A stretch of 64,000 nt of DNA from Pocillopora damicornis (GCF_003704095.1 NW_020843886.1:1-64000), one strand, 5' to 3'; positions 1 through 42,493 are shown, numbered from the stretch's first letter. Numbers and translations: made by a program. Notes: generated from the letters alone by a model not told the origin.

Positions 1-754
1 GCCAAACTGCTGTCAAATGAAAACATACTGTACACAAGGTAAAGAATCAGAAGGCTGAATCCTAGGCTAAATGCTTGAGTTGTAATGCTGTCGAGTACCA
101 GGGACAGACCACGTCCATGATGGTCTTCTTGACAAAATATGGCTGAAGACACTGACTTAACCTATAAAAGAGGACTCGACATCAAAATGGTGTACATGTT
201 AGGGAAGAGATAAATGCTGTTTAGGATGTTTAGCTCTAAAAATAATCTTTATATAAATAGAAAGGATTTATTGACCCTTTGGACGACAAAGGCTGTACAT
301 ATGGTATATAAGGGCCAAGAGACAAGTCAAATCAGTGAAAGAAATAATTAAAAAATACAACATGACATGGTTATAAACCATAACTGTTTGAAGGCAGACC
401 CGTTAGCTATTTGCAAGACTCGACCCAGTACATTTAGACCAGGTTGTAAGTGTAGCCTGCCTACAACTCGGCGACGCGTCCTCCTGCTTCCACTCTTACT
501 CCAGATTTTCACCAAAAAATGCAGAAACGTAAACACTCTGCGTGGGTTGGCGGTTAAATTTTGTTCGACTGATCTAGAAGCGTTTAACATCCATAACAGG
601 TAGTACTTTTTAGTTAGTTCGAGCATCATAAGAATCATCGAGGCATCGAATTTACATAGAATTTACCATTGAGGCATCGAATTTTCTAATTTCGCTCGAA
701 ATAACGACTTACCAGTAGGCAGACAACAGCGATCGCAGAGAAAATGTTTCCCAT
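1..754 (-). CDS. TNFR-cluster receptor A, 5' part (signal peptide, CRD1-start remnant, putative TM); runs off the window edge
   Basis: Exon 1 754-713 MGNIFSAIAVVCLL|GTAAGT. Exon 2 starts at 161 after ttttatAG and reads VKSVSSAIFCQEDHHGRGLSLVLDSITTQAFSLGFSLLILYLVYSMFSFDSSL. Exon-1 size and phase, and the CQEDH motif, match receptor C (MEICQLRHYVFFCVL|VNQANAAQVCREDQH). Confidence 0.55.
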
Positions 755-1230
755 TTCAAAGTCTAAATTTTCAGTGCTAAGCGTCCCAGTGACGTGATTG
801 GGTTATACCTGTCACAAAAGCCACAAATTAATGTATAATATCAAAGGAAACTATGTCGTTTTGGTTAAGTACGCAACAGATCTTACTTGTGTCCTTCGGT
901 GTTTGGTTAAATCTAATTCCGTTTAAACTTGCTGACAAAATTTATGCCAAAGAAGAGCAAGCTTTCGAAAGTGAAAGCTATTTCCATGAATTAAAAGGTA
1001 ACAATCCTATTTTAGAAAGGGAAAACCCCGTGTTCTGACATGGGGATTCCCCGAGTCGAACCAATGAAATTGAAATCGTGGGTAAGCGAAAACCAATCAA
1101 AGGGACAAAGAGTAGGTCACGTGAATAAATTTTAGCTTACGTTTTAGTTACTGTGACCCTAAAGGCGAGATATCCTTCAGTTTCTGCTAAGCAGATTAAT
1201 GAATTGTGGTCTTGGAAAGATACTGAAGCA
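755..1230. promoter_or_regulatory. Bidirectional promoter A with NF-kB, IRF and CCAAT motifs
   Basis: GGGAAAACCCC 1019-1029, palindromic GGGGATTCCCC 1042-1052, GAAAGTGAAAG 967-977, CCAAT boxes on both strands; lies between divergent ATGs at 754 and 1231. Confidence 0.65.
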
Positions 1231-3664
1231 ATGGCCGCAGAAAATACAAACAGAGACAATATGGTAAATTCTGAGCACTGATAGCAATTGTCCCTCGCCA
1301 CTTACAATTGTAGCTTTATTTTATCCGCTGTTCTTCACTTCACTTTCGAAACAGTTATCTTATTTGCATCAATATTTTCGTTTTCCATAGCTCTCCATTT
1401 AAATATAAATAGAAGATCGTTTGCCGAAAAATTAAAACAACAATTTTCATTTCATTTTGTAGAGCGATGAAGATGGGGATCGGTCTCTAGAGGGCAGAGA
1501 TAACAACGAGGGGCTCCTTGCCATAGGGAGTGATGCACAGTATAATTCTGACAGCGACTCTGACTTGGAAGAAAATCGGACCAGGACAGCACGTAGAGAC
1601 GACCTTTCGGAACGATTAAGAGAACAAAGTGAATTTTGTTCCTGTAGTTTAGAAGGGCAACCTACTTTAACGTCCAGCAGAACTCCTGAAATGGTCTGTA
1701 GGCTATGCAGTAAAGCGATAATTCGAAACCGCACTCAGCAAGGAAAACCCAATAAATCCAACCTGAATCCAACTACAACGGAAGAAACCTTCTTAACCGT
1801 TGTTCCAGAGTCGTACAAGGGACATTTGCTGTCGCTTTCCAGTTTATCCCTTGAAGATGAGATCTGCAGCAACTCGACAACAGCATCTTTGCCAACAGTG
1901 TCTTCTGAACCTCAGCGGAAGAAAATTCCTGTACCACGTAAGTTCGATAAGTTTGAGCTCTTGTGCTCAAAGACGGTGTGTGTAAACTGTACTGCTCTTT
2001 TCTTTTCATTCGAGAAGTAACGATTTTGATTTCTCTGTTTGAGAGCTATGTTTATCGCATCATTATCCAGCCAGTCAAATTAGTCCTCGACTTAAAACCC
2101 TTTCAAACCCCGCATAATTGTACATGTCCAAATTAACGAATCTCACTCTTCCAAAATAGTCTTCAACTTAAAATCTGCCTTACTTCGTTTACAGCACTGG
2201 GCCACGTAAAACACGATAGAGGAGCTGTTCAGTGTAAAGAAACTCTCACAATCTATATCTGACCACCATTTTCATGAACGTATCTTTGGAAGGACTTATT
2301 TGCATCTACGTACGTTATTTTTATTCCATGTCCTCCGCAGATGTGTGTGACCATTCGGTGCAGCATCCATCGCCTGGTCTAACAGTGGTGCTCTTCCTTT
2401 TTGAAAGGAGCCATCAAGAAAGGAAAGAAAAGTTATTCATACTTTACATGATCCCTGAAAAAGAGCAACAGGTGAGTGTAGGAAATTGAATTCCTTCGCA
2501 ATTCAAAGTTTTCATCGTTGAATAGTAATTGACACTTGGACATCTTTTTTTTTCCTTTAAGGTATATGAGACAATTTTTCAAAGTTACAAAAATGAGGGA
2601 ACCGAGCAAGGTTACTCAACGAGACAAATTTCATTTTGTGTTAACAATGGCAAAAGCCAAGATTTTCATTCTGTATTTGTTCACGAGCAAATTAGAATTT
2701 CATTTGAAATTGAGGATCAACAGCAACAAAACTTCGTCTCTCCTGAGGATGCAAGACGCCGAGAATTTGTAAGTACATTTGAAACACAAAAATTAAATCA
2801 TTCAGTCCGGATTACACCTTTTATGATAGTTCAATGTTTCGTTATTCATCTTTTATTAGCTTTTAATCCAAACATAGTTTTCTATAGATGTCAAGTTCTT
2901 GTTGGACACTCGTGAATTTCTAGGATTAAGAGTGAACAATCACTCTTGTCAGTGAGTCTTCTGATATCAAGCAAAGGATTATATCTCTTCGCACTGTGCT
3001 TTTCGACGGTTATGAATTTCTGATTCTTTAGGTTTTTAGAGTTGCCAAAATTGAATGTGAGAGCAAAAACCGAGTAGCACCAGGAGCCAAGTCCCATTTC
3101 CGACTTCAGTATGTTGGTGAATCCGAAAATCCTTGTCAAGAACAAGGAAAAATCACCTTAGCCATCGATGCAGAGACACAGTGTTCCCTGTACTTTCCCA
3201 TCGCATTTTGGGTAAGTCTCGTTTACTTTCAGAGTAAGTGATAGCAAAAAGAGTTTTAAAGAATAGTACTTTTCTGAGCAAGCATTTGGTAATAGGAATA
3301 CTGACTGTTAGAATTGGTGGGTTTGGCAAAATAAATTTTCCCAATGAACGCCTATCGCCAACATGTACAATACATTTTTTCTATTTTTTTTTTCAAGTCG
3401 TGAGGCCACCTTGTCATCTATTAAAATATTGTTTTTCATAACCTTTGTAAACTTATTTATTTTGTGATGCAAACCTCCTTTCTCTTTATGAATTGTATTG
3501 TAATTTAAGACTTATAGCATGGTCGTGAAGGTAAATTGTGTCATGATTATCGATTGAAATACCAGCTCCAATTATGACATCTCCTAAGTCGCAATTCTAT
3601 TATCTGAGCTCACTTTAATCTTGAACATTTTTCTCAACAGAGCCCAGTGACAGCAGCTGATTAG
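1231..3664 (+). CDS. UPA-like adaptor A: acidic N-terminus, CxC...CxxC motif, C-terminal UPA-like domain
   Basis: Phase-consistent exons 1231-1263, 1463-1937, 2341-2471, 2562-2768, 3032-3211, 3641-3664 with GT-AG sites. Each exon is homologous to the corresponding exon of the paralog at 20647-24464. Confidence 0.8.
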
Positions 3665-4089: not shown

Positions 4090-4091
<2 letters not shown>

Positions 4092-6672: not shown

Positions 6673-9600
6673 TCACACATCAGTTAATTCTTTGGTGGCC
6701 TTTGCATCAAATATTGCTTTCAACCGATTAGCAACATCAGTTCTCCCAGCTTCTCTCCTCACCACATTAGCAAACTCCCAAACTGTCAGTTCTGGCCTTT
6801 CAGTTGCCAACCATTCAATCACTGCTTTTGATTTTTGATCCTGAAACCTTGCTTTTATTTTGAAGTAATTGGCACCATAAAAACGAGCAATTATCTCATA
6901 GGCCAGTTTTCCACCAATGGGTGTGTCTAAAAGTTCACAAATTGTTTCCAGTTCACTTGAGTCCAATAAGCTTCCTATTGGCTTAGAATCTGAAACACAG
7001 ATTGAACATGACAAAATATATCAGAGAATCCCTGTGTAAAGGTACTGTAATTAGACTATAACACTCAATATACTATTTAAATGATATATTCTTTTCTACT
7101 ACACACACCAAAAATTTTAAAAAAACTTTTTCCCCAAATGAATTAATTTCAATTCATGTTTGGGACAACTAAGGCCTTCAAATTACAAATGAACTTTACA
7201 GTCGGGTACTCTCACTGGAATTTTTACTTTTATAGCAGTAGCATTCAAATTCACTCAGCCCTCAATTTCTGCAAATGTCTTAAATGCATTTTTCCTGTAA
7301 AAATAATCCTCGAATTTTTACCTATTTAGTCCATTTATTTAGCATTTTTCAAACTTGTGAGAAGAGTTCAGATCCACTGTAGGCATGACAAGTATTAATA
7401 ATAATTATACCTGACTTCACCAACTGTTCTGCATTGTGGCAAGCGCTTGTACACAACTTTCCATCACCCTACGATGTAAACCACAATTGATATACATCCT
7501 AAATGGCTCATGCATAGATAATTATATCATGTATAAGCTATCAAAGTGAGTACAACTATACCCATGAAAGGTGAAACCTAAAAAAAGTATAGTTTTGAAG
7601 CAAAAATATTGCCATGCACCCTCACTAGTAGACGCTAATTACAGGCATCCAGACATCATGATAAAATAAACTGGAATTCAGAAACAAAATTAATGAATGG
7701 GTCAGACTGGCCCATTTTACAATTTGCTTGGCTCCTCTTTAACTTTATACCATTTTTTATTTTATCCCTATTGCACCATAAGGCTTGAACAACAAGAGCA
7801 TTATTTCACTTGTGTTTCTATGATACTTATAATTCCTTACTGCACCCCTGACTTACACAACCATTCTGGATAATAAAGGACTTACAGAGCCACATTTCTT
7901 TTATTGTAACTTCAGAACATTTCTGTTTCAAATGGGAGAGATTACCATATATTTTCTCTGTCCAACTGGAATAGAAAGTTAAAAATTAAAGAACTTCATG
8001 TTCACCTACAAGTGGACTGCCTGGGCACTAACTCATACATTCATTACCTCTAACAGTGGTTCACATAATTCAACTGCTGCTAATCCAGAATTATAATGAA
8101 CTTTGGTACTTTTCTTCTTATGTGTTCCCCCATCTGTTGGTAGTATGGTAAAAATTGTTGACTATACATTGAAAGTAATTCGTAATGCATTAAGGACATC
8201 CAAAAATCCCCCAAGTATAATATTAGTGATTGCTTGTAATTAGACAGCACCTAACTTTTGTTACAGAGGGCGAAATTTCTTTTCTCACAAAGTCATAATG
8301 AACATGTAAAGGAGATACTACACAACAACAGTTAATTGTGACAATTTTAGTGGATCAGATTTTGTCACATAAAAATCATACCTTAAATCTTCCCTAATAT
8401 ATTTATTTTGTCTCTGACAACTAGTACACCACATGTAAGATTCTTGACTGAGAATTACCTGGATCAACACAACTATGCATTGGTGACCGTGACTTGCAAA
8501 AGCATGTTAGGTAAATTCCACTCCCAATTACCAGAAGTAGTAGTGCCACAGTGGCTGCAATTGATATACAAGAGTTATTGCAATCCTTGTTTTTAGAAGC
8601 AAACCAACTACCAACCCCAGAATGGGTTATATTTTCTAATCTGTAACCCACATCGGCACTGGTATTAGTTAAGGCTACAGTGACTATGTGACTTGATGTA
8701 GTGGCAGCTGAACTCTGACTTGATTCAGTGGTAACCTGAGGTACAAATTTTGGGGTTGATTTAATATTGCATCTATTGACACTGCTGTGGAAAGAGCAGA
8801 TCATGCTTGATTGAGATCCCAACTTTTCTATACATTCACTCTCCACCACATCTCGATCATCATTGCAGCACTTGGAACATTTAAGACAATCTCCTTTGGA
8901 TTCATCATAATACCTGTTCAAAGGGAAGAGTAAGGAATAAAAAATTATCTTTTTTGGCTGACATATAGAGTAAAACATTAAATGTCAATGTCATCATCAT
9001 TCTTGTTATCATGTCAATGACAGAATTAAAAAAAACTAGAAGCATTGATTTTTCTAAAATTTTTGCCCAACATTTTAAATAAATGGCAATCTAGTAATGG
9101 ACAACCAACTAAGTGGCTCCACTTGCCCACCATTTACAGGTCAATTGGAATTTGAAATGTTGGTTTTTGCAGAGGGAGGAAAACTTAAGGACCCAGAGAA
9201 AAACCTGATGACTGGAGAAAACTCCACTGCACCACCCCTGTGCCATTCCTGCAAGGAAACATTAAATGCCTGAACAATGACAATTAATTTCTATCAGGCT
9301 AGTTTCACTAAAATTTCCTATACCAATAGGCAAATGCCAGGTATTTAAATGTAAATCAAAGCCAAACTAGGAAAATTCTGCAGTTAATCAGATTTTAAGT
9401 TGGAATTATAGTAATTCCAAGCACCCTTTGACACCCTCCCTCCCTTTCACCCCATGGCCACTTCAAGTACAGCTGTTACATGATGTACCTGTCTTTGCTG
9501 TAACATCTCTTTCCACATTCAATGTCTGCTTGACGTGAGCAGTTTTTCATCACCACCTGGTCCTTGGAGCAAGATGAACAAGGAATGCAGACAGATATGC

Positions 9601-9793
9601 TAAATTCATTGGAAAATGACTTTCCCAGTTGGCATGGAACACAGAACACTGTTGCATCAGGTGTTAATGGTTTTGAATTTCCACATTCTGGTGAGATAGT
9701 CTGGCCTGGAGGGCAAGCCTGACAGTCTATACACTGTGGTGGACCATCTGCATTTTCAACCCAGTGTTGGCTTTTCTTGCAAGGATTTGTAGG
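6673..9793 (-). CDS. TNFR-superfamily receptor B: EDAR/TROY-like CRDs, TM, C-terminal death domain
   Basis: Exons 9793-9489 (CKKSQH..CIDCQACPPG..ECG..CVPCQLGKSFS..CIPCSSC..NCS..DIECG), 8913-8459 (YYDESKGDCLKCSKCC, S/T-rich stalk, TM ISIAATVALLLLVIGSGIYLTCFC), 8133-8048, 7468-7411 and 6989-6673 (death domain ICELLDTP..YEIIARFYG..SKAVIEWL..LTVWEF..GRTDVANRL). All phases are compatible; the first exon is uncertain because of the gap at 9832-9930. Confidence 0.88.
9140..9240 (-). mobile_element. Degenerate SINE fragment in an intron of receptor B
   Basis: Reverse-complement similarity to the 3913-4066 SINE (GAGGAAAAC..CCAGAGAAAAACC..CACTGCACCACCCCTG). Confidence 0.55.
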
Positions 9794-10059
9794 CTAAAAG
9801 GTAAATGTTACCTGAACTTCAATTCAGATTTNNNNNNNNNNNNNNNNNNNNNNNNNNNNNNNNNNNNNNNNNNNNNNNNNNNNNNNNNNNNNNNNNNNNN
9901 NNNNNNNNNNNNNNNNNNNNNNNNNNNNNNNACACCGCCGCAAATTTCAACCCAAGCCAATTTTTGCCGAGTGGACTTCAGTTACCCTAATATTCAGAAA
10001 CGCCAATTCGTTATTACACTCTTTGCTCTGAATTTCGCCTGGCGGCGTTAGTGTCTTGT

Positions 10060-10578
10060 ATGATTTTCGTTTCATTTCTCATGTAGAAGGATCGAGGCTG
10101 CTAACATTTTGCAAGGGCTGTCTCAACTTATGCCCTGTCTCAACACACATCAGGTGTGAAATTTTCCTTGGGCACCGTTAGCAGTTGAACAGGAACGGTT
10201 TCATTTTCATTTTGAACGCCGCGCAGAATAATAACGACCTACGCGTTTTCTTTAAATTTAAAGGTACGTGAAGGAATCACAAGAATTCTTGAAGGCAAAG
10301 TGCTGCGTTTGCGGTTGGGAAAATCCCGCCAATATTTTATCGGTTTCTCAGTCACAAGAATATCATGTGATGACAATCACCCTTCAATGAACTGATCGCA
10401 TTTCATTTGATTGGTTGCAGGCGCACGTGAATGAAATCGATGACGTAACGTTTGTAAACAAAACAGCTAGCGTATTTTTAAAGAACCTACGACGAAAGTC
10501 CACCGTCTTTCCTGTTGAAAGTCTACGTATTCACATCGCCGTGAATTTGCGAATTCAGCGGAAGATCTTTTTACAGAA
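10060..10578. promoter_or_regulatory. Bidirectional promoter B with NF-kB, IRF, CCAAT and CRE motifs
   Basis: GGGAAAATCCC 10317-10327, TTTTCGTTTCA near 10064-10074, ATTGG near 10410, TGACGTAA 10441-10448. Confidence 0.55.
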
Positions 10579-12348
10579 ATGCTAAATGGATGTTTCTCAA
10601 GCAAGGCCTTGGAATATCCATTTTTAGCCGTCGCTTCCGTCGAGATTTCGAACTCTCTGAAGAATCATGACGCAATACGAGAAAATGGTACAATTTGTCA
10701 TTTCGTTTGCTTGTTTGTGACGATTTCTCTCGCTTTTGGATTTAGCATGCAAACTTTTGAGCTTAACGCAATATTTTCTTTCCAAACGTCTTCTCCCCGA
10801 TACAGGTGGTTAGCGTTGAGAAGAGATACGTCACAAGACACCGACCGCAACGATCCCTCGAAGAAAGCAATCATTGGTCTTTTTATCGAAAGGTGAGCGA
10901 CTTTTTTTAACTCTTCGGTTCTTAAAGGTCTGATATAGCTGATCTAAACGTTATCTCCTCCATGTTTTGACCGTTTTAAGTCTGCGTAATATTGCATGCC
11001 TTACTTACGTAGGCGTGTCGGAGGCGTATGACGCCATATAAGCGAATGTGCTGTCATAAGCATATTCCTGTCAACAAAAGATTACTCTTCTTCATATGAG
11101 GTTTTACATGATGTAGAGAATGTTTCAAGCGAATGATGTTACGATGAAATAAGCCTAGGCTTTGAAACTACGCATTCGTGTTTCAGAAGAGATTGAAAAT
11201 TTAAAGCAGGTAAGGAAATTGTTTAGGACATAAGTTAATTTTTGACCCATTGTGCTAAAAAGTGCACAGTCATTTAAAGCAAGAATTCGAATTTGACATA
11301 TTCTTAAATTTGCATTTAATTTTGAGTACAACCTACACAATCTTTTCTTGATTTTTAATGGTGTTGTTTAGATTATAGTTAAGGATAGTGGGTCCACAGC
11401 TGTTTATAGTTGCCTATTTTATCAATTTACAAATAATTGTATGTTTGGAGATAAAATGACACAGGGAATATGGTTCATTTTGTACCACAGAGCTGTTAAT
11501 TATTGGACTTACTTCACTAGTTTAAATTCTGGTTACTTTTAATTTTTGCTCTCAAGCTGCATGATATTCTGTATCAGTATAATAAGTTCAATTTCAGTTA
11601 TCAATTGTTCCATCAATATCACTAATAAGTGTTCCTGGTATGCATCATTGTATTGCATCATCTGCATTTAAAGTATTGTTCACAAAGTTAAAGGAATGCC
11701 TTGAAGCATAATTATTGCATCATCTTTACTGTCACTTAAATTGTCTGACATCGCCTTTTTAAGTTAATTCACCTTGAAATGTGTAAACAAAAGATTATTT
11801 TGTTTTATCCAAGGTTTGCATGGTATTGAAAATGCCTGAAGTAAATGTTACATTATAATAAGTCTAGGCTTTGAAATTTCACAGTCATGTTTAAGAAGAG
11901 ATTGGACATTAAAATTAATTTTACTAAAAAGTGCACTGTCATTTGAAGCAACAATTCTAATTTTAGGTATTATGAAATTTACATATGATTTTAAGAAAAA
12001 TCTACTCAATTTTGTTTAATTTCTATTAGTTTTATCTAGATTATAGTTAGGGTTATAATTATAGTTAAGTAGTATTCACAGAGTTGAAGAATGCCTTGAA
12101 CCATAATGCATCATTCTTTCTGTCACTTAAATTGTCTGACATTTTTTGTTGTTGTTCCATCTTGAAATGTGTAAATAGTTAATTTTCTTTAAGTTTATGC
12201 AAAGAAAGTGTTCTATTATTTTGAGTGTTAATAAAGTTAGTNNNNNNNNNNNNNNNNNNNNNNNNNNNNNNNNNNNNNNNNNNNNNNNNNNNNNNNNNNN
12301 NNNNNNNNNNNNNNNNNNNNNNNNNNNNNNNNNNNNNNNNNATTTTAG

Positions 12349-14053
12349 GGGAGTTGAAGTCGAACCATGAATGTCTGTCGTGCTTCATAGCAATATTCAA
12401 GCGAGGAGTTCTCTCTGGAAAAAATCGAAGCCATGTCGTCTATGTTATTCCGAGGGAAAAATTCGATTTGGTAAGATACCGAGCGTCTAGTTAGAAAAAA
12501 TTCAAGGTCTCCTCAAAACCTAAACGAAAAAGGTAACCCTTTTAACCCCCAAGATCTGATTGTCATGTCTCCCTTAGAGCTGCTATACATTTCCTTTCGA
12601 ATTAGTTCGGATAATTTGGTGTTAATTCAAGACAACAACTTCCACATCATACGTTTGAGTATTCTCGTAACCTTTTTGCTGGATGATGTACGGATATTAC
12701 GTGGAAAAGTTACATGTTAATCACTTCTGAGAGTTAAAGGAGTAACGTGAGGTACATTGCTTACTAAATCCAAACTCGCACAGTTGCTTCTCGACACCAC
12801 GACGCCTACAATAGAGTACACTTAATTACATAAATGGAAAATTAATAATACTGGTCAATAGAACCTCACAAGAGTTATCAGATCACAATTAAATATTGGG
12901 TTGAGAACTTGAAAAAAAATTTGATAACGAAAACATAAATTGACACCAACCTTTTGGTGGTTAATGCATTTCATATATGACAACACGTCTTTCGATTTCT
13001 CAGGTGTACGACAAAATCGCTCAAAATGAAGCAGCTGCTTATGAAGGAACTGAGATCGCTGTGATAGATGAGAAAGGATCCTTGTTCGCCTATCATCCTC
13101 AAATGGCAATCCAAAGTGAGGTAAAAATCATCTCTGAAATGGATTGTGGCGAATGTTTTGCCTTGGTCAGTCCTGCGGTAGGTAACACTTTTTCTCCTAA
13201 AAAAATTTTCGGTCTGAGTTATAATATTGCATTCTAATTTACTTTCTAGCATAAATTTGTTTGAATACTCTAGTTAGCAGTAAGTGCTTAACTCCGCATA
13301 GAGAGATGCAGGTTTATCCAGGGCCAGGGGTTGACAACCACAATACATTTAATAGTGGCTTACCCACTGTAATTAACCTGCTCAGTGTTGGGTTTGACTC
13401 TACCATAGAACCTACGGTTTACAACTCTTCTGAAAATAGGTCAGCTGGGCACCCTGTTTGCATTCTGCAATCCGTAAGTGCAAGTTTGGCTGAAAAATCT
13501 GTGAATCGATTCTTTTTTAATAGTCAACCACCATTGGCGTCCAACATCTACTTGCAAAAAGTGAGGAGAGGTTATTTCCTGGCGCTTGTGTCAAGCTGGT
13601 CACCACATATGTTGGAGAGCAAAACACTCTTCGTGAAGACAAAGTCAGGATGGCACTGCTTAGTGGAAAAGCGAGACTGGTCATTCTCATTCCTACCAAG
13701 GTATGGCTTTAGTACTAGTGATGTCTTAATAATAAAACTTCTGTGTTCGTATTGATTGAATCTCCCAAAAAAAAAAATGAAAATTTTTTTCTTCCTCAGT
13801 ACTGAAAACATTCATATAATTTCCTCTCTTCATTCTCAACCTCATTATTAAAAATTGCGAGTGCACTTACCATTCCAATTTGGCTTTACATAACAATATT
13901 TTATTTAATTGCTATTAACAACTGGTTATCAATTAATCAATTAATTGCTTTTATTCATGATCTTCTAATTAGTGTTTTCAGAGTTCCCTACTGACAGCAG
14001 TCTTGCGACTGGAGGCGTTACCTCTTAAGATAGTCAGTTGTTTCAAGTTGTAA
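12349..14053 (+). CDS. UPA-like adaptor B (3' exons; 5' exons probably near 10,600-10,900 and in the gap)
   Basis: Exons 12349-12470 (LSCFIAIFKRGVLSGKNRSHVVYVIPREK), 13004-13177 (VYDKIAQNE..EGTE..LVSPA), 13524-13700 (KSEERLFPGA..YVGE..LIP) and 13982-14053. Phases and motifs match adaptor A exons 3-6. Confidence 0.75.
12534..12746. mobile_element. Short MITE-like element with (T)AACCCTTTAAC...GTTAAAGGGTTAA-type ends (piggyBac-like termini)
   Basis: Inverted termini. Related copies occur near 28310-28510, 28911-29115, 51121-51320, 52082-52285, 52350-52546 and 54750-54940. Confidence 0.6.
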
Positions 14054-14858
14054 ATAACAAAAGAAACCAACATAAAGAACCCAATGATTTTCAGTCGGCA
14101 AAACGTTTTTTAGAATCTTAGAGAGAGCTTCTCTTCCTACAACACGTTGAAGTGCTAACTGCTGCTAGTAGTTGGATTATGACAATCCACGAGAGGTACT
14201 TCCTGGTTAACAATCATATGATTTTAACCTCCCACAATCGCGTGTAAAACCCAGAAAGCACTAATCAATAAAGGTAACTTTCTGTATTCTTAGGTTCATC
14301 ATACGCCAACCGATGGCCTTGAGAATCAAAACTATTCAGGTACAAAACTTAAAATTTAATTCACAAGTCCAGTTGGAATTTTTGTGATACAAGATTACCC
14401 TATGGAGCTTTACCTAGGTCTTAATTACAAGTCAAGTAAGGTTCTGGTGTTTTGACTTGCCAAATATCAAGCACTCAGGTCAGGGAACAGAATAGCTCAA
14501 TTGTTATGTNNNNNNNNNNNNNNNNNNNNNNNNNNNNNNNNNNNNNNNNNNNNNNNNNNNNNNNNNNNNNNNNNNNNNNNNNNNNNNNNNNNNNNNNNNN
14601 NNNNNNNNNNNNNNNNNNNNNNNNNNNNNNNNNNNNNNNNNNNNNNNNNNNNNNNNNNNNNNNNNNNNNNNNNNNNNNNNNNNNNNNNNNNNNNNNNNNN
14701 NNNNNNNNNNNNNNNNNNNNNNNNNNNNNNNNNNNNNNNNNNNNNNNNNNNNNNNNNNNNNNNNNAGAAAGAAAGAAAAATAGATGGCAGGATAGTTGTG
14801 TTTATTTAAAAGAAATTGTTCACTGATCCTTTTCATTTCCCATTTCAAAGTTACGGGT

Positions 14859-15687: not shown

Positions 15688-15796
15688 CAGGTTGAGTTCA
15701 GGTTGAGTTCAGGTTGAGTTCAGGTTGAGTTCAGGTTGAGTTCAGGTTGAGTTCAGGTTGAGTTCAGGTTGAGTTCAGGTTGAGTTCAGGTTGAGT
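15688..15796. repeat. 11-bp minisatellite (CAGGTTGAGTT) x about 10
   Basis: Directly visible; overlaps the candidate stop codon of receptor C. Confidence 0.95.
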
Positions 15797-33342: not shown

Positions 33343-33478
33343 AGTCGTTAATAAATCGGAAACACAGAGCGTTGAAATCTGAAGCTCAAGAGTACGCTAC
33401 TTAGTTTGCGCGCTCGAACGTGGTTTGTTATTGACGTGGTTTAAGCATCACCAAATAAGAGTCTAGCTTTCTATTAAT

Positions 33479-33645: not shown

Positions 33646-33649
33646 CCTG

Positions 33650-33879
33650 AGCCTATCAACCAATGCAACATCTTGACTGCTAATGATAAGGCATTTCTGA
33701 GAAGTTTTTCTCGCTCATTAGAGGGCATTGATGGATTGCTCATGATAATACCCAGAAAAGGGAATATTCTAGACATTTTCATAGGTATTTTGAAGCAAAA
33801 ACGAGAAAACCAAGAGGCTACTAAACGTCTCGTGTTGAAACGTTTTCAGTTACATGGAAGACAGAGAGTAAATAAGTAA
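33650..33879 (+). pseudogene. 5'-truncated copy of the CARD exon
   Basis: ILTANDKAFLRSFSRSLEGIDGLLMIIPRKGNILDIF matches 14940-15167; the N-terminal helices and the acceptor are missing. Confidence 0.8.
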
Positions 33880-34764
33880 ATGTGAATGTAACCATATTGA
33901 TGTAATTTCAGTTATGGTTAATTACGTCATGCTCGCCAAACAAGAACTCCGTTCTTGAGAATGGATCAGAATAAACATAACAACCTAAAATTACTTTATA
34001 GTGTGAATGAATGGACTCTTCATTGTTCGTTTCACCACTTAGCACAATACTTTATCACACTTGCTTTTGTGGTTATCAAACATTACTCATACAAGAGATC
34101 ACTCCCACTTAATCTATACAATCATTAGCTTTAGATAGATAACGTACAATATCCTATGTTCAGAACCTAATAGGCCATACCCTTTACACTTTTGATGGCA
34201 AACTACTACTACTTAAATATACTTAGTAGGAGTTGAGTTTCAGATCTAAAAGTCTAAGAGTCTCACACTCAATTTTCTGTGTAAAAACTAATCATGTTCA
34301 CTTTTCAAAAACACTCTTTCATCTAATTTCTTAGTTTAAACTAGTTGCACGGTCAAATAGAGACAATATGACACTCAGTGTAATACATCTAGTTCATGAT
34401 GGCTAAAGTTCAAGTTTTGAAACCCATAATTTCTGAAGACCATCAGGTTTAATATGAAGCTTTTTAACTGAACAATACAGTCAGTGAAGTCTTGCTCTTT
34501 TCCCTTTCTACTGTTGCAACAGTGATATCTGCTATATTTGTGACTTGATTTCCTTCTGGAAAAAGGAAGAAAGTAGCAACATGGCCAACATATAAAGACT
34601 TTCTGCATCAGTTAAACTAATATTGTTATCTTTTCTCTATGGAACAAATTCTCTGAAAGTAATTTTTACTCTTAAGTGGATTACTTGGAGGGAAACATTA
34701 ATTCTCCTCAGGCACATAACTCTCTGCACTCTAAGTAGTTTTCAATTCAAAAAGAATGTTCAAC

Positions 34765-35730
34765 AACTATTTACCAAAGTGGAGGTGGTTAGTGGTAGAT
34801 ATTTACTGAGCCACAAAACAATAATGCGAATACATGTATCCACTGCAAGCCACTGACTGAGATGAATAGTTGTTTTAGTGTATACTAAAACACTGTGAAC
34901 ATATAACAATAAATTGTTTTAACTTATTTATTCCTGCAACAATTACGATATTTTCAGGGACAAATCCTGAGCATATTGCTCGGAGGTGAATAACGATGGA
35001 TTTGTGCACTTTGAGTCACCAATCAGCATGCCCCTTCAACACTATCTACTGTTTTAGTTTCCGTATATGCTAATTATTGATACTTTTATTAAAACTCATG
35101 AGGCCAACAGCCTATCAAAACATTACTAAAACATCTTGTGTATGACCCTTGATACCTGGTAATCTATGACCATTCTGAAAAGTCTGGTGGTGGCTTTCAT
35201 TTCAGTCCCAGAGGAGTGCAGGGCTGAATGTGCAAGCAATTCCAATTATTGCTTATTCTGAATTGAAACTATCTTTATATAAAGGTCACCAGTGATCTTT
35301 ATATAAAGCTGTGAACATTGTCCACTTTGACTTTGAATCTTCTTTCCTCAAAGTTGGCGTCCTTATTTCTTCTTGAACTTTGCCACTTGCCAAATATTTT
35401 CTTAAGCCACTTTGTGGCATACCATGTAGATTTTGGAATAGAACTATCCAAGAACTCGCTCCCTTCCTCAGCACTTTTTGGTTTTGGGTGGCATTTCAAA
35501 TAAAAACTCTCTGAACCTTTAACAGCAGCTGAACATGGGGCACTTTCCCTTTCTAAATGTAATTAACCCTTAATACATCACGTCACGTTTATCTAAATCT
35601 CTTGAGAGGCATGGGTTTTGAAGCTGTTAAAAAAACTTGCAGCACGTATTTTATCGGCTCTAAAAACATTAGGCTCTGCCTTGTGTTTTTAAACCCAATA
35701 AAACACTGCTGCTCATTTTTAAAACATTAC
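34765..35730 (-). mobile_element. Degenerate Crypton-like (tyrosine-recombinase element) relic
   Basis: The fragment SSIPKSTWYATKWLKKIFGKWQ resembles the N-terminus of Crypton/DUF3504-associated proteins. An AACAACTATT..AAGTGGAGGTG..TAGTGGT.GATATTTAC end repeat is present, also at 38843-38891 on the reverse strand. The insertion is absent from the equivalent region of receptor C. Confidence 0.5.
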
Positions 35731-35757
35731 ATAAAGCCTAACTGACTTTCATCTATT

Positions 35758-38531
35758 TTACCCCTCAGTAAGTACAAAGAAGTCACCATTCACAGCATTT
35801 GGAAACATGCTCTGGTTTTCATAACGGATTGGATCCTACAATAAAATAAACAAATATTTAAAGCTTTATTCTAAGTTGGTATATCTCTTGATCCAAAAGA
35901 TCAGGAAAGCCCACTGATACTAATATTACACTGCTGGTAAACTCTCTTTGGTGTTGTGGATTTACTTTGACAATTTTAATCAATGCATCTATACCTTTAA
36001 GTTTAAATTATTAGTTTCTGGTGCTAAACACCAAATATGACTCTGGCAAGGAAAAAACTTTTAAAAAAATGACCAGATCCAAATTTAAATATACTAAAAT
36101 GAGACCACTGAGTCACCTGCAAATTCACATCTTGAAATTGATAATCATTTTGTGCCACGGAATGTACCACCTAAAATGTACAGTCACCTACCTTCTTAAT
36201 AGCAGTGATTGCATACACTACAGTTTGAGAGGATGCCTGAGTCAAAACAATGGTGGAAAAAAAGCCGTTTTTCTTTTCACTGGTTGCAGGGCTAAATACC
36301 AGATTGCATCTGGGAGTTGTACTGAAAGAGTTCCTCACTGATGCATAGCTCATTTTCTAGATAAAGCAGAAAAAAATTTAAATATTTTCAAAATCACCCA
36401 GAGATACCAACACTTTCAGGGATCTGAGAAAATTCAATTACTAAGTGTAAAAAATTAAGATCTTTGAATCATCCTTTAAATTTTTCCTCTTTTCTAAATA
36501 ACTTGCACTGTTATTGCATAGTACTCAAACAGAGTCTGCAAAATACCATTGGGCAAGCATTATTTAGCTTCCAGCCATCAACATCCTTTACAACAATTTC
36601 CACATCTTCTCTGTGACTAAGAGAAAAATCAAGAGATTCCACTGATGACATAAACTTTCCTCCTTTCTTCTTCTCCTCCCTCAAAAGATTCTGTGGAGTC
36701 AAGTCAAACAAGTTTTATCAAATTTATTAACACAGAAATAGATCACACTGTTATAAAATAACTAACCATGACTGGAGGTAGGATGTTTGATGAACTAGAC
36801 CAGCACAAATTTAACATCAAAATTATAAATAACTGCAGTTACATGATAGATTCTAACTAGACTTCAGTTATGTGCAAAAAGCTTCTGAGAACTTGGTAAC
36901 ATGTCACATAAATTAAAATACCTAGCCTCTGATTATATCAAGATTTTTACTCCTAATAGAAGGAAATTTTATGACCCAAAGAGATCTTTTTGTAGATTGA
37001 AATAGAATAAATTGAATCATCATCTATTTATTGCTTAATATTAGGTGAGGATCTTTAAACTATATTAGTTATTCCCAAGAGCTTACCTCAAATGACCACT
37101 CACAATCATCAAAGCAATACAGCCTCACAACAAGGTCTTCTCCAACTCTGGTGTCATTACAAAATGCCATGACCTTCATTCTTTTGAGTACTGGTAAGGA
37201 CTGTTCTTCACAGTGTCCAACCACTGCAAATGTTGTAAAATGGTCTGTCTCAAAACTAACATGGTTGCTTTTGGGGAAGAATTCTTTTATTCCACTACCC
37301 TTCACATAGCTTACAACAACCCATTCATTGTTTTTCAACTCCTTCAAAATGATTTTCCACTTATTACAAGATAGCACCATGTTTGCACCATGAGGTATCT
37401 GAAGCTCAAGGGGTCCTGTTAACTTGCTCCTTGTGACAAGATAAAATGCTGGACTTAGTGGAAATTCACCATCCCTAAGTAATCCTGGTAAATTCAGCTT
37501 ATCTGATGTGGCATGTAACACCAAATCGCTTGGCACTTGTTGAAGGGTAGACTTATTACTGTCAAGGATAACAGCCTCAACCCCTGTCTTTTCAAACACC
37601 ACATGACCTGGGCCATATTGGTTTGGATGCTCCCACTCCACTTTCTTAATACCTAAGAAATAGATCCAAAAATAATGATAAATAATAATTAGTTATAAAA
37701 ATCTGCACATGTGCAACTTGAAGGTAGCTTTTTTATATGCACATTTGATCACCAGACTTCATATACTTATGAGGTGCTCTGCCTAAAACAAAAGCAAATA
37801 AGTTAATAAGATACAAAACAAAAAATTAGCGACAAAAGGTGGGCTAGCTACTATCAAAAACGCTTGTAACAATAATTTTGAGATACGAGTGCTGATCGCA
37901 AGTACTTGAGATATATAACAATATATACAAAGGGAAAATAATTAGTTATTTAACTTGCCTGAATGTGCGGATTGAGTGGTTTCTGTACTTTCAGAAGGGT
38001 CCTTCTTTTCCAATGATAAACTGTGTCCTTTTTCAAGATTATTTAAAAATGGGCATCGACCTTTACCTTTCAAAGTTTGCCCTTGTCGTTTAGAGATGTG
38101 ATACACAGTCAGGCCAACACATAGACCTATTATAGAGGCTGTGAAAGCATCAAGTTTGACATATTCCACCAGAGAGCTTTCTTGTTTTGTAGTTTGCAAT
38201 TGACTGTTTAGAGCAAAGGACGAAAAAAGCAGCTGAAGTCCAAGCCCACTAAAAGACTCTTTCAACATCATTACCTCTTTGATACAGTCCATAAAACTCT
38301 TTCTATCGTTATGGTTACAACACCAGAAGCATTCTTCACAAGTATTTGACTTGTCATTCAAATAAAATCCTGGTTCGCACCCACCACATATGGTATCCGA
38401 TTTGGTTGAGCAATTGGCGACAATGTTTTGGCCAATGGCACAGATTTTACATGACTCTAAGGTACCATGTTGATTAACAAATGTTTTCCCTACCATTGGA
38501 CGTTCACACTTGGGTATTGCACCATCAGTCA
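35758..38531 (-). CDS. TNFR-superfamily receptor D (paralog of C): CRDs, TM, ZU5 with HFT motif, UPA, no death domain; 5' part in the gap
   Basis: Exons <38531-37959 (GC donor), 37652-37087, 36690-36547, 36356-36192 and 35835-35758; a possible terminal exon lies near 34556-34465. Each exon is homologous to the corresponding exon of receptor C. Confidence 0.82.
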
Positions 38532-39183: not shown

Positions 39184-40053
39184 GGCAGAGTAGCTTCGAT
39201 TGTAAGCCAGCTACAACGAGACCAATTCTCCAGTATACAAGTTGTTCCATTTGGTAATGAGTACTCCCCCCAACAAGAAAATAGACATTTTCATCTTCTG
39301 AACTTGGAAAATGAAATAATAATAAAATTCGAGTTGCGGAGGGAAGCACAGGGAAGATTCCGACTGCAGGAGGAGCAGAGACCTTTCCAGGTGTGTTAGT
39401 TAAACATGAAAACAACTAGGTGTTCCATAAAGAAAAAAAACACTTAAATCAACTCTAAAATTTTGAACAAAAATATGCTTTTAACTCCATGGAATTGTTT
39501 CTTTTCGTCTGTTGATTTGGCATTCTTTTTCACTCTTTAAACAGGTTCCATTGGTTCACATTATGTCCTTGAGCCAGAACAGAATTCCTAGTCCTCTTGT
39601 GCAGGTACATGTGGAATCTCTTTGTGAACCTGGAGAACTTTGCCAGGACCACTTGAGAATGACACTGGCGTACGGAAGAACTACTCAACGCATGTTGATA
39701 CCAATATGGGTAAATGCTGTACATTTCTGCTTACAGTAATGTAATTAAAATCAATTCAGTTCACAACATTCTCTTGCTGACTGCAGAAATTTACTCGAAA
39801 GTTTCATGATGAGTTATGCTAACCTTTAACATTAATATTCAGTCATGTTTTTGCTAACACACATTGGTTGATCTACGGCCTGTTTTGGTCCCTAAGGATA
39901 ATGCCATACAAATAAATTTTAAAGTTATGATGTAACACCCACTTCAAGAGTTTTAATAAACAGAATAAATGAAGATCATCACACAAATCAAACATCACTC
40001 ATCTCCATTTCCATACTTGCTTTCAGTCTGCCAGACCATCCGAATCCACTTAG
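39184..40053 (+). CDS. UPA-like adaptor D (3' exons; upstream exon appears disrupted, possible pseudogene)
   Basis: Exons 39184-39390 (GRVASIVSQLQRDQFSSIQVVPFGNE), 39545-39709 (QNRIPS..CEPGELCQDH..MLIPIW) and 40027-40053. The candidate exon-3 region near 39012-39139 has stops in all three frames. Confidence 0.7.
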
Positions 40054-42493
40054 AAAGGTTCTCTGCATCTGGTGAGTAAACTGAAGGTTCAGATCTAAAA
40101 TACATTAAATAATTTAATTACATTACAAAATCACTGTAACCTCTAAACCACAGTTTTTAAAGGTTGCTGTTGATTGATTTTATTTATTAGTGCCTTCAGT
40201 TAACTGAGTCAGTGTTTCTTGATTTTTCCTCGTCCCTGTCAGCATCTGCACATTTCAACTGTTCTTTTTAGCTACTGGTAAAAAGATTCGAGTTGCTTGA
40301 CCAGCCATTTGATGAAAATTATAAGTGGATGTAAATTCTGCTTTTGGTTTGAGTCTAATTCGTAAGTATGTTTTGACTTTTTAATTTCTTCCCTTTAGTT
40401 GTCATTGGAGGATTGACCATAAATACCAGTCTACAGCATATTACTTATAATACTTTGAATTTTTTTTTATAATACTCCATCCGTAGTATAGTTCATAATT
40501 AAAAGGAGCTACGTTACATTTCATGCACCTCTAAAAGTTAGCCTTCGACCAACCTTTTAGTGGAGAAATCGTAGCCAGGATTCAGATGTTGTAACAGTCT
40601 TTAGATAAAATGATTTGAAGACAAAAATCAGCTTTTAGAAGCAGGCCACTATGAGAAGCCACTACTTTGAACAAGTTAATTTTTTTCTCGTCTTTTCTTG
40701 CAATCTGTTTAAGTTTTCTTCTGTCTTTTATCCCTTTTTGTTACTTTTCAGCTGACAATTTCAGTTTTGGTCTAGTTACATTTGACTGACTGTTGTTTTT
40801 TTAAACAATGAAAGCAATTTTGCTTATCACAGTAAGCAACTTGAAAGCAGAGTGACGTTGCTCCTTTATAGAGGTCAAGGGACAAACGAAGGATAGAAAA
40901 ATGTCTTAGATTAGGAAATCTATAACCACTCTTGCATGATTACCAAAAAAAGCAAAAAACAAAAAAAAATTAAACAGGATGGAGTGACTTTCGTTAAGTC
41001 TTAATTGTAGATCTTTCACTTCATTAGCGAAAGTGAACAACAGAGAAGAAGTAGAATTAGTATAAGTATGCTGGTCATGACTATTTCAATGTTGTCTGTA
41101 GCCCAGCCTAACACCAAACATTCCATCCTCACGCTCACCTTGAGAAATTGGGTGACAGAGGCTATAGTTCAGTTATTAAATGTAAGGTGTTTTGGCGAAA
41201 AGGCCCAAGTAACTTCTGATGGAATTCTGAAACAGCATCTGGGTTGCATTATATGTGCATGAAATGATCAAAGAAGTTGAATGGAAACAAGGACTCACTT
41301 GGGACCTTTTCTTTTAATCCCTGCAATGATTGTCTGGGTAAAATTGCAATGCTTCATGAAAGCTGAAACTCTTGAAAGCGATTAACACTGGAAAGTAATA
41401 CTAACAGTGTTAGAAAATCCAAATTTGCCTTTTTGAGAATTCCATGACTTCTTTCAGCCCTATGTTTTCACACGCACACAAACAGGTTCATTTATGGTCC
41501 AAAGTTTGTCTGTTTGTTTTTTTTTTAACAAATCAGAAAGGAAATTAAACCTTGTTGAGTGTGTGATATTGCTCCTTTTGTAATAGGCTATATTTGATCA
41601 AAACCTGCAATATATCAGTGTGGAATTCTCAAAAGGGACCTACAGTGGCTGATAACAATTTATCGAAGATCTTTGACAAAAATTGAATATGATACCACCA
41701 CCCATAGAATGGATCAGTAATATAGACTGCAACATAGACTATAACTGCTGTTGTATCAAGGAAGTACTCACCATCATAAAACAAAATAGCTTACCAAAAC
41801 ACACCACAATTTGTCAACAATACTGAGTTAAGAAAATCTATGGACATGTTCTTCCATACAGACCACAATTATTACCTTGAAATACATGTACATGTATCAT
41901 GAACTGAGCAGTGGGTGGTGGTGTCATATGAAATCTAATTATCAAAAGATCTGTAGATTGTTGCAGCCATCATAGAGCCTGGTGTAAACTAAGCAATATT
42001 ATCACCACTTCCAAGTTGTGATAGTATTGCTTTGACTACACAAGGCTGAGAGCTGTCAGCATGATAAGCCTTAATTCAAATTTGCAAGCTAGTTTAATTG
42101 TTATAGGATTGTTATGTATTTAATTAGTACAATAATTATCTCTTTCACGTTAAGTAAACATTTATCATAATTCTTAAGTTTGGCTTTCCATTCTGACAGC
42201 TGCATAAATACATGACATTCATTCATGACCTTAAAATATGATCATGTTCTCTCAAGCCATATCAAAATTTATGTTTGGTGTAACTCTAAAAATTCTTCTT
42301 GTGCATTTAATATCACACTAGATTACAATTCTTGTAGCTGCCCATATTAAGCCTCATAATTTTTTCAAAATGATCTGTCAGTCCTGATTGTTGCCAAATT
42401 ACTTGAAAGTCATCATAAGTAGATAAGGTATTGGCCATGAATGAATGTCATGTATTTGTCACTTGTACATTGTTTTTTAATATAAATAGTCAG

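Follow-up and report, generated by a model that had tools for sequence, protein, structure and literature searches.

ZU5-UPA modules are central to UNC5, PIDD1, NLRP1 and CARD8. To our knowledge, the UPA domain and the death-fold effector always belong to one polypeptide in the known cases, and a free fragment arises only through autoproteolysis; UNC5, PIDD1 and ankyrin are not known to have a stand-alone UPA partner, and full-text literature searches on the topic brought up none. Mammalian cells restrain a free UPA-CARD fragment by means of a ZU5-UPA molecule (PMC8081665). For NLRP1 and CARD8, contact between UPA domains reduces the threshold at which CARD filaments form, and ZU5 blocks oligomerisation (PMC7794386, PMC8081665).

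The window considered here, a stretch of 64,000 nucleotides from scaffold C521 of Pocillopora damicornis, holds a repeated head-to-head cassette in which a minus-strand receptor gene is joined to a plus-strand gene for a partner protein (pairs A to D). The cassette is real, though only partly as first described. We lean slightly towards reading it as an ancient, tandemly duplicated two-gene unit specific to stony corals, whose ZU5-UPA receptor and free UPA-fold partner would serve one pathway. The pair looks like an undescribed two-part unit of innate-immune or cell-death signalling, and it is likely that receptor and partner are co-regulated and share a pathway.

Comparison with known systems

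The original prediction suggested a split PIDDosome/UNC5-like kit; the FIIND-CARD proteins NLRP1 and CARD8 are a closer analogue than PIDD1 with RAIDD. The coral pair employs the same vocabulary of ZU5, UPA and CARD, the predicted order of partner B (UPA, short linker, CARD) is that of the active C-terminal fragment, and the partner models match CARD8 UPA at Z 9.1-10.3 and NLRP1 UPA at Z 8.5-10.0. In contrast to NLRP1 and CARD8, however, the coral ZU5-UPA and predicted UPA-CARD come from two genes rather than from autoproteolysis, the ZU5-UPA lies on a TNFR-type membrane receptor rather than an NLR, 160-190 residues of separate N-terminal extension precede the domain in the free UPA protein, and the CARD is missing in three of the four coral paralogs.

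The likeness to UNC5 is seen in the coral type B receptor (Stylophora L011, and C4113:1-4573 on another contig of the P. damicornis genome), where ZU5, UPA and a death-like last exon lie behind the transmembrane (TM) segment, and in the partner, whose best structural match is UNC5b residues 688-828; the coral ectodomain, however, has TNFR repeats rather than Ig/TSP domains. Unlike UNC5, PIDD1 and ankyrins, coral receptors A, C and D end directly after UPA, without a death domain. TNFR1/Fas with TRADD/FADD, and PIDD1 with RAIDD, resemble the coral locus in that a receptor with a TNFR ectodomain is matched with a small soluble protein, a possible bridge to CARD/caspase, but the proposed coral contact would be UPA-UPA or ZU5-UPA rather than death domain-death domain, and the coral receptor and adaptor genes adjoin and use one promoter. 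Plant paired NLRs (RGA4/RGA5, RRS1/RPS4) share the divergent pair, the common promoter and the duplicated copies; their proteins are unrelated, and the analogy is one of genome layout only.

Organisation of pairs C, D and A

In place of joined exon models, database proteins identical or orthologous to the window's products (P0092, P0039, P0041 and P0084) were used for searches and folding; joined exon translations served for frame checks and trees only. Four divergent receptor/partner pairs had been proposed. Pair C is established to the base and pair A is divergent, pair D is split by a gap, and pair B is unverified as a pair. The proposed ATG spacings hold, at 754(-)/1231(+) in A and 20225(-)/20647(+), or 422 bp, in C. 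The proposal that the partners form one uncharacterised multi-exon family is likewise upheld; annotation in Pocillopora, Stylophora, Orbicella, Montipora and Desmophyllum is 'uncharacterized protein' only. The features of pair C are as follows.

15786..20370, minus strand: receptor C, four TNFR repeats, TM, ZU5 and UPA, without a death-fold domain
20179-20370, minus strand: receptor C exon 1, ATG at 20225, RNA joint 19393 to 20179
end at 19393, minus strand: receptor C ectodomain-TM exon, RNA joint
~17384-17965, minus strand: receptor C ZU5 exon; Pfam ZU5 and UPA are above cut-off in the orthologs P0026 and P0027
~16819-17019 and 16492-16656, minus strand: receptor C UPA exons
near 15785-15925, minus strand: receptor C last exon
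20226..20646: pair C shared promoter, NF-kB consensus site at 20484-20494 and two CCAAT boxes at ~20513-20550
20647..24464, plus strand: partner C coding region, six exons, 327 aa, with RNA joints and an open spliced frame
..20671, 21079-21513, 22617-22742, 23152-23352, 23915-24080, 24434-, plus strand: partner C exons (RNA contigs)

RNA-seq, which had been suggested as a check of the gene models, gives splice sites for this pair, and the annotated partner protein agrees with them. The introns of partner C are GT..AG (RNA contigs from four runs and three studies), and the spliced model is identical to P0092 (RMX53346.1 / pdam_00018688). The same four runs show the receptor C intron 19394-20178; spliced contigs for both genes thus occur within the same runs, contigs being a record of occurrence and not of co-variation. 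The four TNFR repeats of receptor C (Pfam PF00020 / TNFR_c6) score 75 bits, E 5.8e-21. Within 20308-20370 the two transcripts meet or overlap at their 5' ends. Pair C is a bidirectional gene pair, with divergent transcripts off one short promoter.

Pair D contains the following features.

34443..38531, minus strand: receptor D, paralog of C; ectodomain-TM exon open from ~37903 into the gap at 38532
37079-37636, minus strand: receptor D ZU5 exon
36514-36714 and 36189-36353, minus strand: receptor D UPA exons
38532-38631: gap that splits pair D
39184..39709, plus strand: partner D, exons 4 (39184-39396) and 5 (39545-39709) only, exons 1-3 lying within or before the gap

Judged against C, ~3.7 kb of pair D content is missing; the last TNFR repeats of receptor D before the gap are 47% identical to receptor C. 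(Receptor D was considered as a pseudogene and this was rejected, the apparently absent exon being an open exon that enters the gap.) L014, the Stylophora ortholog of the pair, has no gap, and its two genes lie head-to-head at a distance of 300 bp; its receptor has 746 aa with TNFR and UPA, and P0100, of 345 aa, is the full-length Stylophora partner. Pfam scans bear out the earlier description of receptors C and D as TNFR-TM-ZU5-UPA proteins without a death domain.

Pair A lies at the contig end.

1..754, minus strand: receptor A, 5' end only, ATG 754, donor near 712, the rest lost at the contig end
3-161, minus strand: fragment of the receptor A second exon (translation)
755..1230: pair A shared promoter, NF-kB consensus sites at 1020-1052
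1231..3223, plus strand: partner A; P0041 (ortholog from an RNA contig) matches at 66-89% identity by tblastn, with a family profile match
1463-1933, plus strand: partner A exon with acidic N-terminus and Cys motif
2340-2771 and 3032-3223, plus strand: partner A exons of the predicted UPA fold

In the orthologous pair, both ORFs lie on one RNA contig (L010), 254 nt apart. The receptor ORF of 386 aa runs from a signal peptide through a short stalk and a TM segment to ZU5-UPA. Receptor A had been called a TNFR-family gene, but in the L010 ortholog TNFR repeats (Pfam PF00020) are absent, ~25 residues separate signal peptide from TM, and Pfam finds ZU5 and UPA only; because its ortholog has no TNFR repeat, receptor A belongs to the TNFR family by descent only.

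The window's ZU5 and UPA exons taken alone fall below the Pfam cut-offs (PF00791, PF17217), at 13.4 and 14.6 bits; receptor orthologs exceed them (P0026, ZU5 28.1 and UPA 29.2; L010, ZU5 21.6 and UPA 35.6). By these sequence matches, receptors A, C and D carry a ZU5-UPA module. The residues at the ZU5/UPA border are YFA in C, HFT in D, HLS in the A ortholog and Desmophyllum, RLS in Montipora and HFA in Stylophora P0008; the canonical FIIND autoproteolysis motif, (H/S)-F|S, is found as HFS or SFS in none of the receptor borders read.

Pair B and the UPA-CARD partner

The region of pair B is interrupted by gaps.

6676..9793, minus strand: receptor B of the original prediction; TNFR repeats 9479-9793, repeat and TM exon 8424-8984, death-like exon 6676-7020
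9794..12347: stretch between the B genes, with gaps 9832-9931 and 12242-12341; 5' exons of both flanking genes absent
12348..15167, plus strand: partner B, predicted to be a UPA-CARD protein; 64-87% identity in alignment with Stylophora P0084
12348-12473, ~12968-13177, ~13527-13700, 14294-14339 (mini-exon) and 14851-15167 (CARD exon), plus strand: partner B exons
14510-14765: gap within the last intron of partner B
33648..33884, plus strand: CARD exon relic (3' two-thirds), 82% nucleotide identity to 14937-15176, at the left end of the C-to-D duplication

The gene first taken as receptor B matches Pfam TNFR_c6 at 40.6 bits, and its death-like exon has an ESM-Atlas feature match of 0.91 to Death clusters; that exon has no Pfam (including PF00531) or PDB sequence match. 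ZU5-UPA was not found in this gene by genome Pfam ZU5/UPA scans, which also miss the window's known divergent exons. Its closest paralog is C4113:13515-16369. Two gaps separate its exon 9479-9793 from the first visible partner B exon, at 12348, and the window lacks partner B's large N-terminal exon. The gap-free loci L001, L002 and L011 contain the missing partner B exon and a different receptor at this place. In Stylophora, Desmophyllum and L002, the gene facing partner B is a TNFR-ZU5-UPA receptor with a death-like last exon, and its P. damicornis ortholog is C4113:1-4573, at the start of that contig. It had been claimed that the pairing persists although receptors have either death-domain or ZU5-UPA tails. 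All verified pairings have a ZU5-UPA receptor, and the basis of the contrast is pair B, which is unverified.

The CARD, in turn, had been counted among the parts spread over co-regulated genes. The CARD exon scores 27.4 bits against Pfam CARD (PF00619, cut-off 23.9); the relic gives no Pfam CARD match. A CARD-only gene was rejected, since the CARD exon has a phase 1 acceptor, into which a conserved mini-exon upstream leads, passing from phase 0 to phase 1. The splice phase is 0 at the end of partner B exon 5, 1 at the end of the mini-exon (46, 46 and 43 nt) and 1 at the start of the CARD exon, an order (0 to 1 to 1) conserved in the window, L002 and L001 (three species). A Desmophyllum gene model of 418 aa terminates with the stop codon of the CARD exon. 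The CARD is missing from Stylophora isoform X1 (P0084), and no RNA read spanning the exon 5, mini-exon and CARD joints was seen. Judged by these phases, partner B most likely has the CARD exon as its last, and would then be a germline-encoded UPA-CARD protein with 15 residues of linker between the two domains.

The fold of the partner proteins

The partners had been described as stand-alone UPA proteins. This stands at the level of the predicted structure and finds no sequence support in Pfam, hhalign or PDB profile searches. AF2 models of two partners (types C and B), built on shallow alignments of 21-22 rows, have pLDDT 80-93 within the domain, which in type C comprises residues 165-320. Each model was searched against 48,161 chains, with a background of Z 7-8 quoted by the tool. 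Against the UPA of UNC5b (residues 688-828), the type C model gives VIA Z 11.3, with 2.7 A over 135 residues, and the type B model (P0084) gives VIA Z 12.4, with 2.5 A over 136 residues. The matches of type C at Z >= 8 are the UPA domains of UNC5b, NLRP1 (rat, human) and CARD8 (Z 11.3/9.4/9.1/8.5); type B returns the same set (Z 12.4/10.3/10.0/8.7) plus one BBSome chain at Z 9.1. In sequence, the partners match no Pfam family, as exons or as full proteins (E<=1). Local hhalign of the partner domain with the receptors' own UPA gives a probability of 0.1%, and nothing is found with ZU5; partner profile searches of PDB sequences yield no UPA, only insignificant eL37 zinc-ribbon matches to the Cys motif.

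Shallow alignments, together with the lack of Pfam and profile matches, would be understandable if the domain were a generic beta-sandwich that AlphaFold draws UPA-like, in a family unrelated to ZU5-UPA signalling; other sandwiches do reach Z 6-9. This we regard as very improbable, however, given that the UPA domains of four proteins make up nearly all matches at Z >= 8 in both independent wide searches, and that their alignments, of 118-136 residues at 2.5-3.8 A, exceed the background of Z 7-8. The C-terminal domain of the partners is thus predicted to have a UPA fold. In partner C it would follow a disordered acidic N-terminus and a CxC..CxxC motif; in partners A, C and D, no effector domain comes after the UPA.

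Shared promoters and conservation of the cassette

The shared promoters measure ~0.3-0.8 kb, and up to ~1.2 kb in L002. The NF-kB consensus (GGGRNWYYCC; 181 kb scanned) occurs in 11 of the 11 unambiguous shared promoters, A and C in the window and nine at other loci. Head-to-head intergenic stretches, ~5% of the 181 kb, contain 12 of the 17 site clusters, and sites of this type are present in the shared promoters of five coral genera. The orthologous pair A contig L010 has a consensus site at 1302, and another lies at 10318, in the gapped stretch between the B genes.

A partner-family profile run over the genome (234 Mb) finds five loci, the four in the window and one broken copy on C4113 with an in-frame stop, located among TNFR genes; all five adjoin TNFR or ZU5-UPA receptors. 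In the C2974 array of this genome, a search at E<=0.1 gives no partner-family exon. The partner family is coral-only. As far as synteny in other corals is concerned, Stylophora, Orbicella and Desmophyllum keep the head-to-head order, as does one more coral contig (L001, L002, L010, L011, L012/L013 and L014); the order is conserved across five genera. Gene trees, which had also been proposed, agree with each other: receptor tree and partner tree each put B as the deepest, long-branched clade. Pairs C and D stem from a single segmental duplication (74-82% nucleotide identity), whose left edge cuts the CARD exon, and the independent cases are therefore fewer than four.

This duplication, with its edge through the CARD exon, fits an account in which the linkage is historical only: an ancestral divergent pair with a bidirectional promoter would have been block-copied, the shared promoter being hard to split, and the role of the partner would be unrelated. 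Block duplication predicts the concordant trees, tandem copying of a two-gene unit accounts for the repeated adjacency without a functional link, and the UPA modules of receptor and partner have no sequence similarity. Such an account is nevertheless rather unlikely in our judgement. The same rare fold is predicted in both neighbours, a receptor adjoins the partner at every partner-family locus examined in five genera, and one partner appears to have a CARD, which as a death-fold signalling domain resembles the domains found after ZU5-UPA in known proteins.

A model for the receptor/partner unit

In the reading that we favour, a two-gene unit acting in one pathway, gene 1 would encode a type-I membrane protein with a cytoplasmic ZU5-UPA. 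Its TNFR ectodomain would be retained by types B, C and D and lost in A, and type B alone would have a death-like tail. The product of gene 2 would be soluble and would combine a disordered acidic N-terminus and a Cys4 zinc-ribbon-like motif with a UPA fold at the C-terminal end, to which B adds a CARD. The two products would be produced together for the same pathway. By analogy with NLRP1 and CARD8, the receptor ZU5-UPA may dock the free UPA protein. (A prediction of the cognate pair A complex, with the L010 receptor tail (residues 95-386) and P0041 residues 160-356, gave a score of 0.00 with the partner poorly folded without an alignment, and speaks neither for nor against binding.) Clustering of the receptor by ligand, or its processing, could then lead the UPA domains to oligomerise; in type B, UPA oligomers might nucleate CARD filaments and so recruit CARD caspases, and the CARD-less partners A, C and D might tune or cap the assemblies.

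A more specific form of this model, a 'split FIIND', is possible but doubtful. Here TNFR-type ZU5-UPA receptors would hold free UPA or UPA-CARD in trans, so that a surface ligand directly gates a CARD platform resembling an inflammasome or PIDDosome; the UPA proteins that lack a CARD would be dedicated, co-induced regulators, and the system would be induced by NF-kB and date back at least as far as the stony corals.

CARD-only and pyrin-only proteins are known to cap inflammasomes. By analogy, the CARD-less UPA proteins A, C and D could be decoys or inhibitors rather than adaptors, co-induced in order to cap UPA assemblies, and their lack of an effector domain after UPA and the fast evolution of the partners, with long tree branches, are consistent with this. 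So is the finding that UPA-UPA contacts drive oligomerisation of NLRP1 and CARD8, which ZU5 blocks (PMC7794386, PMC8081665). The conserved N-terminal Cys4 motif and acidic region, however, could recruit other factors, and we consider the decoy role unlikely.

If the paired-unit reading is true, a free UPA-CARD encoded in the germline would offer a natural experiment, both on the restraint of CARD assembly driven by UPA and on the origin of the 'function-to-find' domain. The three UPA-only paralogs, each tied to a ZU5-UPA membrane receptor through a shared NF-kB-type promoter, would offer another. The model would give a testable role to gene families so far called 'uncharacterized protein', and it would link the already known expansion of coral TNFRs to a possible caspase-activating output.

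Organization of the receptor/partner pairs

The original prediction placed the start codons of pair C, a minus-strand TNFR-type receptor gene and a plus-strand partner, at 20225 (-) and 20647 (+), and both gene models are now backed by RNA splice joints. These come from contigs of four poly(A) RNA runs (three studies), in which GT..AG joints connect the partner exons and the receptor intron is present in the same runs:

18166-19395 (-), 410-aa receptor C exon
19394-20178 (-), receptor C intron
..20671, 21079-21513, 22617-22742, 23152-23352, 23915-24080, 24434- (+), partner C exons

The joined partner exons give an open frame of 327 aa that is identical to the Pocillopora damicornis protein RMX53346.1 (pdam_00018688; P0092). 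The 410-aa receptor exon contains four TNFR repeats (Pfam, E 5.8e-21) and the next exon has a weak Pfam match to ZU5; full-length Montipora orthologs pass Pfam for TNFR, ZU5, and UPA, and have their C-terminus directly after UPA. Since receptor exon 1 extends to 20370 and partner contigs start at 20308-20330, the 5' ends of the two genes abut or overlap. (It should be noted that contigs in poly(A) RNA-seq assemblies cover whole introns of partner C, including 21524-22646, so these libraries carry pre-mRNA or DNA; contig presence without splicing is weak evidence of transcription, and spliced joints alone were counted.)

The start codons of pair A also lie where they had been placed, at 754 (-) and 1231 (+), and the body of receptor A is missing at the contig end. 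In a close relative, an RNA contig of 2.5 kb (L010) encodes a 356-aa ortholog of partner A (P0041) and, on the opposite strand 254 nt away, a 386-aa ORF composed of a signal peptide, a stalk of ~25 residues, a TM segment, ZU5, and UPA (Pfam, 21.6 and 35.6 bits, respectively). A TNFR repeat is absent from this ORF by Pfam, which argues that receptor A has lost the ectodomain; thus the divergent pairing proposed for A stands, but its receptor lacks the repeats of the TNFR family to which it had been assigned. In Orbicella faveolata (MZGG01000860.1) pair A is found twice, ~20 kb apart and inverted, with up to 98.8% identity; as the region is gap-rich, the second copy may have arisen either by recent duplication or as an artefact of assembly.

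The remaining pairs are affected by gaps in the assembly (234.35 Mb, 4,393 contigs), which fall in the window as follows:

9832-9931, gap
12242-12341, gap
14510-14765, gap
38532-38631, gap

The ectodomain-TM exon of receptor D is open from ~37903 to 38531 and continues into the last gap, an interruption that had been anticipated; beyond it partner D shows exons 4 and 5 only, and pair C content amounting to ~3.7 kb is absent. In Stylophora (L014) pair D is contiguous, with 300 bp between a 746-aa TNFR/UPA gene and its 345-aa partner (P0100); a BMT5-like gene comes next, as it does in the window. Self-comparison of the window shows that 14937-24036 recurs at 33648-39664 with 74-82% nucleotide identity, so C and D represent a single block duplication and not independent events. 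The left edge of the duplication interrupts the CARD exon, leaving a relic at 33648-33884. The segment 30414-33633 also recurs, at 44986-49615. An FDXACB1-like gene (BMT5-like methyltransferase plus FDX-ACB domain), which is also the gene after partner D in Stylophora, occupies 44989-49079 (-), and 30414-33633 is a partial, apparently degraded copy of it (82-89% nucleotide identity). Unrelated to the cassette, a large exon at 60494-61561 (+) encodes at least three cadherin repeats together with an N-terminal cadherin domain of the FAT4-like type (Pfam E 5e-39).

Pair B as originally drawn is only putative. The receptor at 6676-9793 combines TNFR repeats with a TM segment and a last exon that is possibly death-like (no Pfam match; ESM-Atlas feature score 0.91 to Death clusters), and the first partner B exon to be seen, at 12348, lies beyond two gaps and 2.5 kb. 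Between these gaps, much of the sequence consists of diverged tandem repeats (11069-12175, 66-79% identity). The N-terminal partner B exon of ~150 residues, missing in the window, is present in three gap-free coral loci, in Desmophyllum (L001), a further coral contig (L002), and Stylophora (L011). In all three, partner B faces another receptor with TNFR, ZU5, UPA, and a death-like last exon (815 aa in Stylophora; 61-65% identity among the three). The P. damicornis ortholog of this type B receptor lies at the very start of another contig (C4113:1-4573, +); its ZU5 exon is 69% identical, and it clusters with the Stylophora gene with 100/100 support. This suggests that the scaffold holding the window is incomplete or misjoined at the gaps between 9.8 and 12.3 kb. 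Of the four divergent pairs proposed, A and C are seen in the window, D is intact in Stylophora, and B stays a putative pair.

Partner B and the CARD exon

Partner B exon 5 ends AAG^GTATGG at 13700 in phase 0, and the exon starting at 14851 in phase 1 encodes a CARD (Pfam, 27.4 bits). Joining them directly shifts the frame, which is kept by way of a mini-exon at 14294-14339 (46 nt in the window and L002, 43 nt in L001), an intron block conserved in three species that is bordered by AG and GT and closes in phase 1. The Stylophora isoform X1 includes the mini-exon, reads through its donor, and stops without the CARD; a Desmophyllum gene model (418 aa) spans the partner ATG to the CARD exon stop, and exon chains of such length exist. 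As no RNA joint linking partner B exons to the CARD exon was found, that partner B is a UPA-CARD protein is a strong prediction rather than a fact. In Desmophyllum (L001:17921-18258, -) the 3' third of the CARD exon aligns to the window in a shifted frame only, through either a true frameshift or a sequencing error in the assembly.

Predicted fold of the partner family

A profile of the last shared partner exon matches 45 proteins among 1.84 billion representatives; all traceable ones are from corals, and the named members (Pocillopora, Stylophora, Orbicella, Montipora foliosa) are all annotated 'uncharacterized'. Orthologous partner exons are present at a Desmophyllum locus. The proteins match no Pfam family, and profile comparison showed no relation to the UPA of the receptors themselves or to PDB sequences, so that their assignment as UPA is a matter of predicted structure. 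For type C the AlphaFold2 model is that of P0039, which differs at 7 positions from partner C of the window; its N-terminal half is disordered and residues 165-320 form a confident domain (pLDDT 80-93). Foldseek's top matches to this domain are UNC5b, NLRP1-FIIND, and ankyrin-B. By VIA-align it superimposes on UNC5b 688-828 with Z 11.3 (2.7 A, 135 residues), and on the UPA of rat NLRP1 (9.4), CARD8 321-444 (9.2), human NLRP1 1222-1350 (8.5), and the ankyrin-B UPA (7.6); in a Foldseek-independent search of 48,161 chains, the UPA domains of UNC5b, rat and human NLRP1, and CARD8 were the sole matches with Z of at least 8. The model of the Stylophora type B partner (P0084) likewise matches UNC5b (12.4), CARD8 (10.3), and NLRP1 (10.0 and 8.7); a BBSome chain (9.1) is the one further match with Z of at least 8. 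The models thus agree with the proposal of a stand-alone UPA. An N-terminal CxC/CxxC..CxxC motif resembles a zinc ribbon, at a sub-threshold score.

Conservation of the pairing

Across the P. damicornis genome, the family profile matches the four partners in the window and C4113:7770-8081, and no others. This fifth copy (C4113:7770-9096, -) has the type B receptor on one side and a TNFR-death paralog on the other and is probably a pseudogene: exon 5 contains an in-frame stop, exon 3 is represented by a similar piece, and exon 4 went undetected. Its head-to-head neighbour is a TNFR-TM-death-like gene (13515-16369). Genome-wide, 41 TNFR repeat matches are spread over more than a dozen contigs, and C4113 carries seven additional TNFR genes without a partner. 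A separate array of four weak Pfam UPA matches, ~12-14 kb apart (G000:C2974:22842-60698, +), is not detectably homologous to the partner family.

In other corals a ZU5-UPA receptor lies opposite every readable partner locus (L001, L002, and L011, two each; L010; L012/L013; L014). Both families are present in Montipora, a complex coral, and the Stylophora genome preprint puts the robust/complex split at 245 My or more (10.1101/197830). Trees of the receptors (ZU5 exon) and of the partners (UPA region) agree in that type B branches deeply with full support and C groups with D. This concordance fits co-duplication of receptor and partner, but block duplication alone gives the same result.

The residues at the ZU5/UPA border, the self-cleavage site of PIDD1, NLRP1, and CARD8, differ among paralogs and species (YFA, HFT, HLS, RLS, HFA), and HLS resembles the GPS motif HL^S/T:

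17400-17440 and 37100-37140 (-), ZU5/UPA border in the window (also L010; P0016, P0026, P0008)

The shared promoter

The window contains 10 matches to the NF-kB consensus GGGRNWYYCC, against 2.7 expected, at five places; three of these five are in promoter A, the gapped B stretch, and promoter C. Every head-to-head spacer of the other loci holds a site, and elsewhere in those loci there are only four:

1020-1052, promoter A
10318, gapped B stretch
20484-20494, promoter C
L001 9687, 22508
L002 9487, 19016
L010 1302
L011 9961, 16362
L012 9986
L014 9837

Because the promoters share a common origin, the number of sites cannot be read as a probability; nevertheless, the motif has persisted amid flanks that diverged. 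Two CCAAT boxes are found in promoter C as well.

Possible mechanism

No paper was found on TNFR-ZU5-UPA receptors, on free UPA or UPA-CARD genes, or on these gene identifiers, in literature that included a P. damicornis TNFR preprint and a survey of death-like domains; full-text coverage was incomplete, making this lack of reports an absence of evidence. The UPA-CARD fragment of NLRP1 and CARD8 assembles with itself, its UPA reducing the threshold for CARD filaments (PMC7794386), and the free fragment is held inactive by ZU5 and a neighbouring full-length molecule (PMC8081665). The coral unit has the same parts, but divides them over two genes, and we therefore favour a model in which receptor and UPA proteins would be made together and make contact through UPA-UPA or ZU5-UPA. 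By this analogy we infer that type B would link to CARD caspases, and that the CARD-less types would serve as modulators.
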